Of a DNA stretch of 64,000 nucleotides, positions 52,301 to 58,300 are shown piece after piece. How positions within the stretch are numbered: the first letter of the stretch is position 1; each line of letters begins with the position of its first letter. Below the pieces are notes generated by a model that saw only the letters and a program-made list of their open reading frames with translations, was not told the origin of the DNA and made no database searches. This DNA comes from Aplysia californica (taxonomy: Eukaryota), in the NCBI RefSeq assembly GCF_000002075.1, contig NW_004797575.1, forward strand, positions 680,525 through 744,524. Reading direction: 5' to 3'. Both the position numbers and the translations under genes were made by a program.

Positions 52301-55300
52301 TAGATCGCCAGGGCACATCACTTGTGGCTGTCCAAGCTGGCAGTTTGTGTACACCTCGGTGACCAGACACAACCTGGCCAATGAGGAAAAAACAGAATAC
52401 AGTCAAAATTAACTTTCTGAGACAATCACTCATTGTTGAGGAAGAAAAGTGGCAAATTAGACAGGTGGCTGTCTTATACAATATTATTACAATGTTAAGT
52501 TTTAGTAAGAGTTTTACAGCACTTGCAGCACAATAAGGTCATATAAGTGCCGAAGATTATATGCGTTACAAAATAGTAACAAACACAAAAAAGAAGGAGG
52601 AACAAGGACAAAAGATGTTTGATAGGAAAGGAGGAGCAAACCACACCAGAGCACCTGCCAACCGCTCACATCATTATAATGTTCTTTAAAAAACCGTATG
52701 GGAGGAAATGGGAAGTGGCCATTTGTACAGGTTCATAATCTTGTGAAGGTAGATGTTAGAGCAGGTTCCACTCTATTTCTATTGACCAAAAGACCTCACT
52801 AGACACAGGGGGTAGATATGTAGGCCCATGTGTGTGTGTGTGTGTGTGTGTGTGTGTGTGTGTGTGTGTGTGTGTGTGTGTGTGTGTGTGTGTGTGTGTG
52901 TTTGTGTGTTAAGAGCAGGGGGGAGGGGGAGGGAGGCCGGTCTATAATGTTTTTGTTTCTCCTTCCCCAACGTGCTAGGGGCGGGCCACTGAGCGGACGG
53001 AGACTGCTGGCCTCCAGTAATCGCGCTTCTTCCCACAGCGGCAGCGCGGCTTGTGCCCGTCCCAGATTTTCCTGGCGTGTCGTCGTTGTTTTGCTTTACC
53101 GCCGTCCCTCCCGTCCCGCGTCCTGGTTTGTCTCCCTTCCCCCCGACCTTGTCCCAAATATTGTTGGCGTTGGTGTCTGACACCGACTGACTGACTGACT
53201 GCCACCTCTGCCCACCACGACGTGGTGTTGTTAAAAGTAGTAAACGTCCTTGTCTGTCTGTTTGTTTGTTTGTTTGTTTGTCTGTCTGTCCATAACGTAG
53301 CTGTGTGTTGCTGTTCTTACTCTCTCTCTCTCTCTCTCTCTCTNNNNNNNNNNNNNNNNNNNNNNNNNNNNNNNNNNNNNNNNNNNNNNNNNNNNNNNNN
53401 NNNNNNNNNNNNNNNNNNNNNNNNNNNNNNNNNNNNNNNNNNNTGTGTGTGTGTGTGTGTGTGTGTGTGCGTGTTTGTGTGTGTGTTTGTGTGTTTGTGT
53501 GTTTGCATGCATGTGTTTTTGGTACTTGTCAGTCTCAAAACAACAAAATATCTGATGTCAAAAAGAAACTCAAGATGTCAAAAATTATATTATATAGGGC
53601 CTACATATTCATTTTCCAAAAGATTTAATGTAGCCTACATACCATAATTATACAACACACATCCAGTAGTAATAATAAAAATAAAAATAGTAGGCTAATA
53701 ATAATAATAATATTAATCATAAAAATAATATAAAAACAACCAACAATAATAATTGCATTCATATAACGCACATGTTCACTCAAATGCATATTCCAGTATC
53801 CACTGTTCTATCATAGTTTGAAATACTACAATAATAGATAATAATAACGTAGATCCTTATGAAACCACAACCCTGGTACACATTACAGGATGACTTTGAA
53901 TTAACAGTTAGCGTACCATAGAAAACTATATCTGCCCTCAACGCTTTACAGCAATATAGGATGAAAAAGTAAAAAAGTAAATGAAGTATCTAGTATTTAG
54001 GTTTGCAGAAACTCTACCTGTTGGAAAGACACAAAAAGAAAAATGTTATTATTGTTAGCGCAATTAAACGTTACCTTTCATCAGGGGCAATGGGAAGCCA
54101 GACAAGATCTGTGGTGACACTGGTCTCCCGCGGCATAAACATGGTGTCCACAGTATGACCTTCAACTTGGTACCGGTGAACGTCGTCAATCTGAGATCTC
54201 TGCCCGCCTCGGTTCAACCACTGCTGTCTTCGCGTTTGCACGGGAAGGGAGGACAACTCTGGGCATACTCGTTTCACTTTGGTGAGAATTGTGACATTCA
54301 TGTCTTTGATGGTCTTTGCAATATACCGTTTAACCAGTATATGAATAGGACCTATATAATAGTAGTTGCAAATACGATTGTCAAACCCTCTCCGGTCGAA
54401 TCCAAAAACATCAAATCCATTTCGATCAAACCCTTGTTTGTCATATCCATATTTGTTGTAACCATAGGGGTCAAAGATGTTCAAATCTTCAATATTGATG
54501 TTTGGTAAATAAGATCCGTTAGCATGAAGGCCGTATGGTGTGAAGCCCTGTTGGTTATATCCATAGCGATTGTACCCAGATCGATCAAAACCTAGGGGAT
54601 CAAACTCATCCAAGTTGTAGGTATCTGTGAAAAATCCAAATCTGTCTATACCTGAATCATCAAACCCACTGCGATTGAATCCTTCTCTGTCATAGCCATC
54701 AATGTTATAGATGTTCCGGTCATCCAAATTCCCTGAAACATCATATCCGCGAATGTTATATCCATCTCTGTCATAACCTTCTCTGTTAAAGCCATGACGG
54801 TCATATCCTTGAGAGTTGTATCCATATGTCCGAACCTCTGTAATATTGCACGGTACACCCTCTGTAAGGGGGAAATAATCCACACAGAGCTGAATACGGG
54901 AGTCAAACACATCATCAGGAGTTGTCTTAAAAGGGTCGAGCCTGACGTATCGATAATCAAGTGGGAAAGACAACATTCCCTCTTTGTGTCTATCCTGCCA
55001 ATCAGTCCACAGCTTGTCGACCGTGGCCATCAGGGAGTAGAACAACGGGTCGTAAGGTGCAAAATCTGAGGCCATGTGACCCCCAACAAAACTCTGGTAC
55101 ACCCGAGCAAATATTTCCACCTGCAGCCTGAAGCGATCGTAGGACGGTTCCCTCAAAGCCAGTTCCACATTCACGACGGAGGGCAGGCTGACAGAAGTGT
55201 TGAATCTCCTCCGCAGGCAGGGACTCAAGTACGGTGGGTGGTAGGACTTGAACGGGTGGTATCTCACACAGTCCTGCTCCCCTCCGTTCCCTCCCATCAC

Positions 55301-58300
55301 ATTTGCTGCCCAGATGGAAGACTGGTGGGGTTTTCCTGCATCCACTGTCCAATCATAGTACGGGATCGCCACACCGCAGTCAATGTTCTGAATGGCTTGT
55401 TCCATGTTTCTCAAGAACTGCCTGTTCCATGGAAGGAAGAGGGGACTGCCAGCTGCCTGTGGTTTGTACGAGGCGTAAACTGAGGCAAACTCAAACCACT
55501 GAGAGGGATATCCCGTGTTTTGAGTCAGTCGTCTCACAGCGGACTGGTATCTGAAAGAGAAGGAAAATCCTTAAAAACTCCCAGATAAATCTGAAAAATA
55601 TGAGGAGAAATGAACTTAACGTTGCCCACAAAAGAAACAAAAAAGGCAACTCAGTCTGATACAAACAGGATCAGTCATCATTTCTTTGAAATGGAAAGCA
55701 GAGTATTCATGCACAAGCCAGGAAAGAATAAATAATGTTGACCTATGAACTCAGAAAAAATTTTACACACTCAGTCACTTGTGTCCACAAAGTCCTTAAA
55801 AACTTCAAGTTCTGGTTTATCAATGAGAAAATCAATATCAAACATAAGCGATATATCCATTCCAATTGTAAAGAGTTTTGTATTTCTATTGGGGACACCA
55901 TTCTTTCAACTCTGTTTAAGTGTTCTGTGTGGTCTTGTGCTGTATACAATAGTTCTATCATGTTTTAAACTTTTATATCTTGGGAGGAGAAAATTATTGG
56001 CCACTTGATTAAACTACTCAATTAATTCTCAAAACAAAAAGAGCCTAACACTGTTTTAAATAATGATGCAATCCTTGTTGATCAGTTACAGCAATATGCA
56101 TTCTTTCAAGTCTTTCAAAATGACTTTATAGTGTAAAAAATGACAAAATCTAATAACGTGAGATCTATGCCAAATGGGACAGTACTTACGAAGAATAATC
56201 GAGAAAGGACAAAGCCTACCAAAATCTTTTATTGAACAGGGATTAACCAAGCTATATTTCACAAAAATACTTTCCATTCCAATTTGAAAATTTGTTAAGA
56301 TAAGATTAGATCAAATGATCATCCCTAACAGACAAAAGTACTCAACAAAATTTAAAAAACCCTCGCACCTGTCCAGTTCATCACGGGACATTTCCCTGAT
56401 TTCTTTCCTCTTTACAGCAAAGTCGCAGACACACAGGATGACGCCCTTCTCTGTACATGAACACGTCTGGCAGCCGAGCTGGAACTGCTCATATATGGAG
56501 AAGGTCTTATTGCCATGGCGACAGCCACACGGCTCACCACAGCCAGATTCTTGGCACGTCTTCCCCAGGGTAAACTTGACGACCTCTTCCCCTTCTCCTA
56601 GAATAGAACAGAAAAGGAACATGGTGTAGGTCATTGGGCCCTAGCCTAAAGAAGAAACTACAAGGGGCAAAATAGGTCCTACTGATTGTTGTTGTTGTTG
56701 TTGTTGTTGTTGTTGTTGTTGTTATCAATCCAGCAACAGCTGGGCTCTCGCCCTTCTGTCCAATGCCATGTAGTGATAAGTGCAGGTTTGCTGCAGTTGC
56801 TATAATGTTCCATAGAGTGTGTTGTCAATGTTAGGTGTCGGAGGGAGAAGGATAGCTCTGATGTCATTTAGAGCTGTACAGTGGAAAAGGTGATGGTCCA
56901 CTGTCTCATATGCATAGTTACACAAAGGACAGGTCCTACTGATTACAACAGCATACAGACAGCCATCTTTTTTTAAAATACAGTACATGCAGTTTTTTAA
57001 AATTATTTTTACAGGAAATGCTGTTGCCAAGAAAACAAACTCTTTGAAACATCCCAAATCGCTGATTTTAGAAATACAATTTTGATATCATTTCCTTATT
57101 ATTTTTAAAGCAAGTGTTGTTTTCTTGGTAAAAGCATTCATTTCCTTGGCTCTCCTGTAAAACTGTGAAAACTGTATAGGCCTATACTGTACTTTTGAAA
57201 GTGACAACAGGGAGAAGAACATCTGATGTACAGTGCATGGCATCTTAGAAGCTATCACAGAGCCTGATTGAGAGAATGCAGAAGAAGAGCAAAAAAGAAT
57301 CTACTCCACCCTTCCCCCTTTCCATCCCCTGTCCCCCATTTCACCCTTCTTCAATCCATCCCTCTCTCATTTCGTCCACCCTCTCCCTCCCTAACTCCCC
57401 CCTCCCCCTCACTTTACCTAAATATGGAAAGTTAAAGAAAAGCTATATAAGAACAAAAAGAACAATGCAGAAGAAGAGCAAAGAGAATCTTCTTCACCCT
57501 TCCCCCTCTCCATCACGTGTCCCTCATTCCAAACCTCCTCTATCCCCCATCCTCTTTCTTCATCCACCCTCTCCCTCCCCAACTGCTCACCTCACTTAAC
57601 TTAAATATAGGAAGCTAAAGAAAAGCTATACAGACACAAAAAGAACAAGAAACGCCCACAAACTCCACAGCACCAAGTAACTCACTGGCTCTCTCCTGAC
57701 ACCGAGACAGAGTGGTGATGTCACAGCTGTAAGAGTAGGCGCCCGACACTCCGTACAGGTCCAGTCCCATTCTGTCATTCCCATGACAAGACAGACCTAT
57801 CCTGAAAGCAAAAAGACGTACACATATGTCAATTACCTCCGCAAATAATAACAATAATAATAAAAACACATATCATTTGTAGCCTATATCACAAAATAAC
57901 CACAATCTTTGAGAGCCAAAAACTAGAAAAGAGTGTTTCTGAATGTTGCGCCCCTCCCCCCCCCCCACACCCCCCAAAAAAAAATTTTCACAAGAGCTTT
58001 TCCTTTCATCAGTTGTAGGGGCATTCACCCCATACTATATCAAAGTACAAAGGTAAACACTTACAAAATGAGACAATAAGGTAGAGACTAGAATGACACC
58101 AAAAAATTTCAACTGAAAGGCCAAATTTGAAAATCTACTTTAAATATCAGGGTGTGGGGGCGGAGCAGTTAGTGTGCTTGTCTGCGAAGCAGAAAGTCCG
58201 GGTTCAAGCTTGGTTCAGACACGCATTTTTTTCACCCCCTCCTGCCCACCCAGCAGTAATGGGTACCTGACTTCGAGTTGGGGAAGTAAAGGCGGCGTGG

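Follow-up and report, generated by a model that had tools for sequence, protein, structure and literature searches.

The dicopper centre of type-3 copper proteins follows a strict definition, with the spacing H2(8)H3 and H1(3)H2 between its histidines, a phenylalanine at -4 of both H3 ligands and an aspartate at +4 of CuB-H3 (PMC3658974). TYRP1 and TYRP2 are reported to keep all six histidines and to bind zinc (PMC3658974; PMC10113262). Hexamerins, pseudo-hemocyanins and cryptocyanins are described as having lost copper binding and O2 chemistry and as having been kept for storage (PMC6850205). Kcp, the kielin/chordin-like protein, is reported to enhance signalling by bone morphogenetic protein (BMP) (PMC10315795, PMC11321374). 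Here we describe a tyrosinase-like domain encoded on the minus strand of a 64,000-nucleotide stretch of the Aplysia californica genome (contig NW_004797575.1, positions 680,525 to 744,524; hereafter the window). It is probably the second of two such units carried by a giant secreted protein whose architecture is kielin/chordin-like. A preliminary description of this DNA had called the domain a pseudoenzyme, and our analysis supports that reading: the fold is predicted to be kept, the dicopper site is gone, and the sequence appears to have been retained by selection. The family to which the domain belongs is not mentioned in a survey of metazoan type-3 copper proteins (PMC3658974), and a 2024 survey of spiralian tyrosinases records, only as outliers, very long sequences that contain kielin/chordin-like domains (PMC11667028). 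A literature search for tyrosinase pseudoenzymes and for tyrosinase-like proteins without His returned nothing relevant, and the loss of His in this family is not described there; databases label its proteins only "uncharacterized" or "kielin/chordin-like".

With the alpha-subclass (secreted) tyrosinases and the mollusc hemocyanin units the Aplysia domain shares the fold, the motifs FLPWxR, IPYxDW, VGGxM, DPxF and WxxWQ, the Asp at +4, and the H2(8)H3 and H1(3)H2 spacing of the ligand positions. It differs from them in the replacement of the six ligand His and of two further residues of the aligned hemocyanin units, Glu at -7 and Asn at +1 of CuB-1 (both Arg in the Aplysia domain), in being embedded in a giant multidomain protein, and in its extra conserved Cys and its His98 and His158 motifs. 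The domain matches the Pfam family PF00264 (Tyrosinase) with an E value of 8e-21 and 75.8 bits (cut-off 22.6) over profile positions 2-213 of 214, nearly the full profile, and over its first ~190 residues. A Pfam scan at E values up to 1 gave PF00264 only, and no match to the arthropod hemocyanins. The claim that the scaffold motifs are intact was borne out: the first helix lies at the end of the exon at 56369-56596, and FLPWNR, IPYYDWT, CLRR, VGGHM, DPLF and VDKLWTDWQ are all found in the exon at 54075-55550.

We number the residues from the Tyr codon at 55549-55547. The six ligand positions are then occupied by Y25, A33 and N42 at CuA and by A148, Q152 and M174 at CuB, the same replacements that had been read by hand from the sequence. 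They are confirmed by phmmer, by the genome's own hemocyanin, by an alignment of the family and by a census of the His residues. The phmmer alignments to structures in the PDB covered multi-unit hemocyanins and did not reach CuA-1, which was taken from the family alignment: the column of Y25 (TAC, 55475..55477) is His in P0256, P0035, Anguilla and unit 2 of Ptychodera. A33 (GCT, 55451..55453) stands opposite the His of CCLHG in the own hemocyanin and precedes position 42 at the eight-residue H2/H3 spacing; its placement agrees with the aligned range of the Bacillus megaterium tyrosinase (query 27-214, chain 58-280) if there is no gap at the start. In solved mollusc hemocyanin units N42 (AAC, 55424..55426; FLPWNR for FLPWHR) is opposite the His of WHR, A148 (GCT, 55106..55108) and Q152 (CAG, 55094..55096) are opposite the two His of HNxxH, and M174 (ATG, 55028..55030) is opposite the second His of DPxFxxHH. 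For CuA-2 (CCLHG opposite QAAG), CuA-3 and CuB-1 to CuB-3, the same register was obtained with the hemocyanin exons of the genome itself. At the stretch CCLHGMATFPQWHR, the alignment of the own hemocyanin with the domain assigns CuA-2 to A33 and CuA-3 to N42, and EITHNAVH...VHHS of the hemocyanin lies opposite EIFARVYQ...SLMA. The assignment of M174 also agrees with the published motif (PMC3658974), with F170 at -4 and D178 at +4. In the relative P0256, each of the six columns assigned here is occupied by His.

Apart from the histidines, the residues that define a type-3 site are thus present, the spacing being kept along with F38, F170 and D178. The six-His pattern of the tyrosinase family, H1(n)H2(8)H3 at CuA and H1(3)H2(n)H3 at CuB, is absent. 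The domain of 230 residues contains only five His, namely H75, H98, H104, H158 and H188. None falls in residues 1-74, which comprise both CuA helices and the loop between them, nor inside the helices 137-155 and 168-187, which carry the CuB positions. Because all six ligand His are absent and the four ligand helices hold no His, no type-3 dicopper centre is possible, and the domain is predicted to be neither a phenol oxidase nor an O2 carrier. Position 42 is N, T or S among the sea slugs, while the flanking FLPW and R are fixed; variability at this position in fixed surroundings is what an abandoned ligand site in a conserved scaffold should show. As a separate observation on the hemocyanins of this genome, about 25 clustered PF00264 matches at C231:778000-920000 have the canonical HNxxH and HH and represent hemocyanin functional-unit exons. 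A few of these exons have in-frame stops, which may reflect introns or broken copies, and further tyrosinase-like exons lie on C862.

An AlphaFold2 model of 54800-55549 (minus strand), built on an alignment of 53 sequences, has a mean predicted local distance difference test score (pLDDT) of 86.9 and a predicted template-modelling score of 0.83. Foldseek matched it to bacterial tyrosinases (E 7e-12, TM-score 0.77, probability 1.00). Superposition of the model, one of the checks proposed in the preliminary description, gave a VIA-align Z of 26.2 with the tyrosinase of B. megaterium, at a root-mean-square deviation of 1.8 A over 218 of 226 residues and 33% identity; Z was 20.5 for human TYRP1 and 19-20 for the hemocyanin units of Octopus and keyhole limpet (KLH). 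The complete tyrosinase fold, with its four-helix bundle, is therefore predicted to be kept.

The assignment would be overturned if the register were wrong and other His residues occupied the canonical positions, leaving the copper site intact. The CuA-1 position does lie outside the phmmer alignments to solved structures, and bacterial tyrosinase has ~10 residues more in the loop that separates CuA-1 from CuA-2. A shifted register would nevertheless have to draw its ligands from residues 1-74 and from the helices 137-155 and 168-187, in which there is no His, and the Phe at -4, the Asp at +4 and the spacing all fit the present register, as do the extent and identity of the structural alignment. 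We consider an error of register of this kind to be highly improbable, contradicted as it is by the His census of the domain.

The domain appears to be under strong purifying selection. In the comparison of Elysia chlorotica with P0004, both sea slugs, the nonsynonymous rate dN is 0.095 and the synonymous rate dS is 2.15, for a dN/dS of 0.044; this is the only pair with a finite estimate, and with dS near saturation the ratio is a rough one. Against Aplysia the synonymous sites are saturated, with a proportion of differing synonymous sites (pS) of 0.78-0.83 (0.83 for Elysia) and a corresponding proportion at nonsynonymous sites (pN) of 0.21. Identity over the domain is 62% with Nucella, 56% with unit 2 of Pinctada, 48% with unit 2 of the annelid Lamellibrachia, 46% with the shark and 45% with the hemichordate, and 21 columns are invariant across the 53-sequence alignment. 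The tyrosinase-like domain is at least as conserved as most of the VWC exons of the same gene. The check on selection and conservation in orthologues that had been called for thus indicates retention, with orthologues found across Bilateria.

The domain is transcribed and correctly spliced. A contig of 6052 nucleotides at a depth of 22, assembled from the run X1, joins the exons 54073-55550, 56369-56596, 57685-57800 and 58433-58601. The parts that it skips run from CT to AC on the plus strand, that is, they are GT..AG introns of the minus strand, and the contig extends 58 nucleotides past the 3' exon end and ~4 kb further 5'. X1 is presumed to be RNA, for which this spliced contig argues. Two conservative changes, V150L and K189R, distinguish the transcript from the assembly.

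The preliminary description had also regarded the loss of all six ligands as unusually complete. That part of it which concerns the count is correct, the domain retaining none of the six His; the state is not, however, peculiar to the Aplysia copy. It is shared by the sea-slug relatives of the Aplysia gene, by unit 2 of Pinctada, and by Esox, Umbra and Oncorhynchus. The closest named match is in the sea slug Elysia. Full-length relatives, named "kielin/chordin-like protein" or "hypothetical", were found in Pinctada, Dreissena, Mactra, Nucella, two spiders and Ptychodera, and, under the same kinds of name, in a bryozoan, amphioxus, hagfish, zebra shark and Umbra. Shorter gene models of the family come from many ray-finned fishes, Gigantopelta and Ridgeia. 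The vertebrate members among the matches listed are those of hagfish, shark and ray-finned fishes only, with no amphibian, reptile, bird or mammal protein among them, which suggests that the tyrosinase-like N-terminal half was lost in the tetrapod lineage.

In a maximum-likelihood tree, unit 1 forms a clade (support 98/95) of molluscs, annelid, spiders, hemichordate and the single amphioxus domain, and the remainder is unit 2, including the single domain of vertebrates, which stands beside the hemichordate unit 2. From this split it follows that the duplication of the two units predates the protostome-deuterostome split. The CuB-1 His is absent from every family domain examined except that of P0256, where alone in the family the column of A148 is His. 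Within unit 2, His is never found at CuB-1 and almost never at CuB-3, whereas CuA-3 keeps it in most sequences and CuA-2 and CuB-2 keep it in some. Judged from these alignments, the complete loss in Aplysia would be the endpoint of an ancient, family-wide degeneration rather than a one-off event, and the dicopper site had most likely gone before protostomes and deuterostomes diverged.

Unit 1 of the Aplysia gene is less degenerate. It is encoded in three exons on the minus strand (L013 4821-4666, 4197-3976 and 2947-2645), ~2.6-4.8 kb beyond the high end of the window, and it has His at CuA-3, CuB-2 and CuB-3 and Ile at CuB-1. Its motif YMxHxMHA places two His 2-3 residues away from the canonical CuA-1 and CuA-2. 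Bivalves, the annelid and the hemichordate share this conserved pattern of His, and spiders share part of it; unit 1 might still bind a single metal. At the other extreme stands P0256 (L018 70-7320), a protein of 2416 residues from a Logan transcript contig (run SRR14727189) that has six ligand His at the correct spacing, together with a Kunitz domain and a weak Kazal match. The domain of P0256 may be in its ancestral state, possibly an active one; the position of P0256 in the tree is unsure owing to its long branch. The family provides a natural series, from none to six ligands retained, for asking what a copper-free tyrosinase scaffold does.

A domain of this kind could serve as a decoy or as the partner of an active type-3 copper protein, pairing with unit 1 or with a secreted tyrosinase or sequestering phenolic or tyrosine-containing substrates with no turnover. 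The preserved fold and surface scaffold motifs would suit such a role, the same polypeptide carries the His-bearing unit 1, and the genome has canonical hemocyanin and tyrosinase genes. Unit 1, however, has no CuB-1 His in any species examined, so an active partner within the protein itself is lacking, and the fish and shark proteins carry a domain of the unit 2 type only. We regard this role as decidedly improbable.

The precedents differ from the Aplysia domain in instructive ways. The classical case of a dead dicopper protein retained in a non-catalytic capacity, as the Aplysia domain appears to be, is that of the hexamerins and pseudo-hemocyanins. They are free hexameric proteins of the haemolymph from the arthropod hemocyanin/phenoloxidase branch, whereas the Aplysia domain belongs to the branch of tyrosinases and mollusc hemocyanins; for these reasons they are an analogue and not the same family. 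TYRP1 and TYRP2 resemble it in that they belong to the tyrosinase family and their metal chemistry is altered, as is their oxidase activity, which is changed or reduced; they keep, however, the six His of which the Aplysia domain has none. The likeness to kielin and KCP concerns the rest of the protein: the Aplysia gene has a long VWC array followed by a C8-TIL tail, and the shark, amphioxus, fish and mollusc proteins that contain the same tyrosinase-like domain bear kielin/chordin-like names. The cited KCP papers make no mention of an N-terminal half with tyrosinase-like domains, Kunitz domains or G-Y-D repeats. The family suggests that the proteins of KCP type outside the tetrapods possess a large N-terminal half that the mammalian work has left unconsidered.

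The gene, on the minus strand, is at least 68 kb long, and its N-terminal exons reach at least L013:8509, beyond the high end of the window. The encoded order is Kunitz, Cys-rich module, tyrosinase-like unit 1, G-Y-D repeats, EGF, Kunitz, tyrosinase-like unit 2, ~30 VWC repeats, C8 and TIL. An extracellular context is indicated by the Kunitz, EGF, VWC, C8 and TIL domains and by the signal-peptide-like N-terminus of the Pinctada orthologue P0188. Taken as a whole, the evidence is probably best explained by a non-catalytic domain of a kielin/chordin-like protein that has kept its fold without the copper ligands and is expressed and constrained. In the N-terminal half of the extracellular protein the domain would act as a non-catalytic module, rigid and stabilised by disulfides, and its most likely role would be that of a protein- or ligand-binding surface or of a spacer. 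The VWC repeats of the same protein would be of the BMP-binding type. Where selection retains a dead enzyme, there is usually a binding or regulatory function that has gone unrecognised, and the present case would be that of a copper-less tyrosinase fold conserved since before the protostome-deuterostome split inside proteins of the BMP-binding kielin/chordin type.

Several observations weigh against this explanation. The domain has two His that are not ligands of the canonical site and that a non-catalytic role leaves unexplained. H98 (CAC, 55256..55258), in the motif CVRYHPF, is a family-specific residue that does not vary among the 53 aligned sequences, and H158 (CAC, 55076..55078), in VGGHM, six residues past the CuB-2 position, is His in 61 of 67 family sequences. 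The exons have zero depth in three polyA RNA runs of the species (X20-X22), and expression is therefore restricted. Finally, the putative orthology with mammalian KCP is based on database names and shared architecture.

The first of these points would be accommodated if H98, H158, the Tyr at CuA-1 and Glu145 formed a new metal or catalytic site, making the domain a different metalloprotein or enzyme. Beyond their conservation, the two His positions are set apart by P0256, in which the six ligand His are present and the H98 and H158 columns are Gly and Thr; the H98 column is also Gly in a tyrosinase-like exon of the Aplysia genome itself (L017). Y25 is likewise kept in the lophotrochozoan orthologues (30 of the 57 sequences with a residue in the column). 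Two His are nonetheless insufficient for a type-3 site, H158 lies past the end of its helix and H98 lies in a long loop. At position 158 unit 1 has Asp, some canonical hemocyanin units also have GGH, and P0256 provides only one data point for the contrast. A new site of this composition is, in our estimate, quite unlikely.

The loss of the six catalytic ligands and the lack of coverage in the three polyA runs might alternatively be those of a sequence in decay, either a pseudogenised exon or a dead domain that drifts neutrally inside a large gene. Such decay is hard to reconcile with the 492 codons that are open up to a canonical donor, with the spliced transcript, with the low dN/dS and the identity to the annelid orthologue, and with the high confidence of the model. 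Neutral drift is contradicted by the open frame, the splicing, the dN/dS and the conservation alike, and we give it almost no credence.

A broader proposal goes beyond the non-catalytic module that we favour. The two copper-less tyrosinase domains, each accompanied by Kunitz, Cys-rich and G-Y-D segments, could have formed an integral N-terminal half of the ancestral bilaterian BMP modulator of the kielin/KCP type, a half that molluscs, sharks and teleosts would have retained and tetrapods would have lost. Its domains would have acquired new ligand or metal binding, perhaps through His98, His158 and the CuA-1 Tyr, and would couple BMP modulation to the recognition of a phenolic or tyrosine-rich matrix. 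We put this forward as a speculation that is, on balance, unlikely to hold in full.

The exons were delimited from splice signals, the X1 contig and collinearity with relatives; they were submitted singly to profile searches and folding, and the three translations of unit 1 were linked end to end, an X marking each join, for the alignment and the tree. The window as a whole is eukaryotic in character, with a GC content of ~39%, spliced genes and microsatellites. From 58612 down to 4165 it is collinear by tblastn with the Nucella lapillus protein P0192 (2954 residues), in the order G-Y-D repeats, Cys-rich module, tyrosinase-like domain, ~30 VWC exons and then C8 and TIL. P0192 carries PF00094 (VWD); the C8 and TIL domains of the window were found by the Pfam scan. 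The Lamellibrachia satsuma protein P0177 (1723 residues) is collinear with the gene through both tyrosinase-like units. It begins with Kunitz, Cys-rich module, tyrosinase-like unit 1, G-Y-D repeats, C-module and Cys module, continues with EGF, Kunitz, G-Y-D repeats, Cys-rich module and tyrosinase-like unit 2, and then repeats the series of G-Y-D repeats, C-module and Cys module before its VWC repeats.

The exon at 54075-55550 (minus strand) begins at the acceptor ...TTTCAG at 55550 and is open for 492 codons, to ...LPIAPDE-R. It encodes in succession residues 1 to ~228 of tyrosinase-like unit 2 (54866..55550; supported by PF00264, AlphaFold2, Foldseek and VIA-align), a tract of G-[YF]-[DN]-x-x pentapeptide repeats (54365..54823), and a conserved C-terminal module (CNYYYIGP...LPIAPDER; 54075..54364) that ends at the donor AG|GTAACG. 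A TAA at 54071-54073 is intronic, as this canonical donor precedes it and the orthologues continue into the next exons. Upstream, the exon at 56369..56596 (minus strand) codes for a Cys-rich module and, at its end, for the first helix of the tyrosinase-like domain; its limits are given by the transcript joints 55550|56369 and 56596|57685 and by the donor AG|GTGCGA. The Pfam scan matched this Cys-rich module to no family, and the module is homologous to its equivalents in the Nucella, annelid and fish proteins. Each tyrosinase-like unit is flanked by conserved Cys-rich modules of two kinds, the first preceding the unit and the second following the C-module. Those at 56374-56586, 62141-62332 and 51183-51317 (minus strand) belong to no Pfam family, yet they have been kept from molluscs to fishes.

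Further 5', all on the minus strand, the same transcript includes a small exon at 57685..57800 (joints 56596|57685 and 57800|58433 in the X1 contig) and an exon with G-Y-D repeats at 58433..58612, supported by the transcript contig and by collinearity with Nucella. The second Kunitz/BPTI exon lies at 59992..60204 (PF00014, E 7.7e-16) and matches residues 702-771 of the annelid P0177. Between the two units there is an EGF exon at 60649..60816 (PF00008, E 3.1e-7). A Cys module without a Pfam family closes unit 1 at 62141..62332, assigned by collinearity with P0177, and the C-terminal module of unit 1 is at 63407..63646, the tyrosinase-like domain of this unit being encoded just past the end of the window (L013 4821-2645). 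On the 3' side, also on the minus strand, ~30 exons at 11842..48654 encode tandem VWC (chordin-type cysteine-rich) repeats, identified by tblastn with P0192 and by PF00093 (E 2.5e-10 for 47234-47479). The 3' end of the gene, a kielin-type VWD-C8-TIL tail, is represented by C8 and TIL exons at 4165..5235 (PF08742, E 2.4e-23; PF01826, E 2.5e-8). The stretch 52274-52453, which was also matched by tblastn, holds stops in the matched frame.

The G-[YF]-[DN]-x-x repeats (54365-54823 and 58433-58612, minus strand) were modeled by AlphaFold2 with pLDDT values of ~80-94 as a string of short beta-bridges. Within the window these repeats matched no Pfam family. The model of the repeats with the C-module gave no Foldseek match, and a wide VIA-align search of solved structures reached a best Z of 3.1. 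Many large proteins of bacteria, for instance from Syntrophomonadaceae and Desulfotomaculaceae, do align with the repeats, the identity being 40-47%. The bacterial proteins with G-Y-D-like repeats often contain UvrD-type helicase domains or PF25296 as well.

The introns have features of their own. The intronic segments 56706-56872 and 58209-58375 have a summed X1 contig depth of >160,000, with polyA-run reads on both strands and many variants, and they look like members of an abundant, transcribed family of interspersed repeats. A run of N at 53300-53500 lies inside an intron, between (GA)n and (CA)n microsatellites. Reads of X20-X22 join 53721 to 57844 and 57863 to 53700, with non-canonical ends (AA..CA) and extra AT-rich letters in between; these joins probably derive from another AT-rich copy of a repeat, rather than from a splice or a circle.

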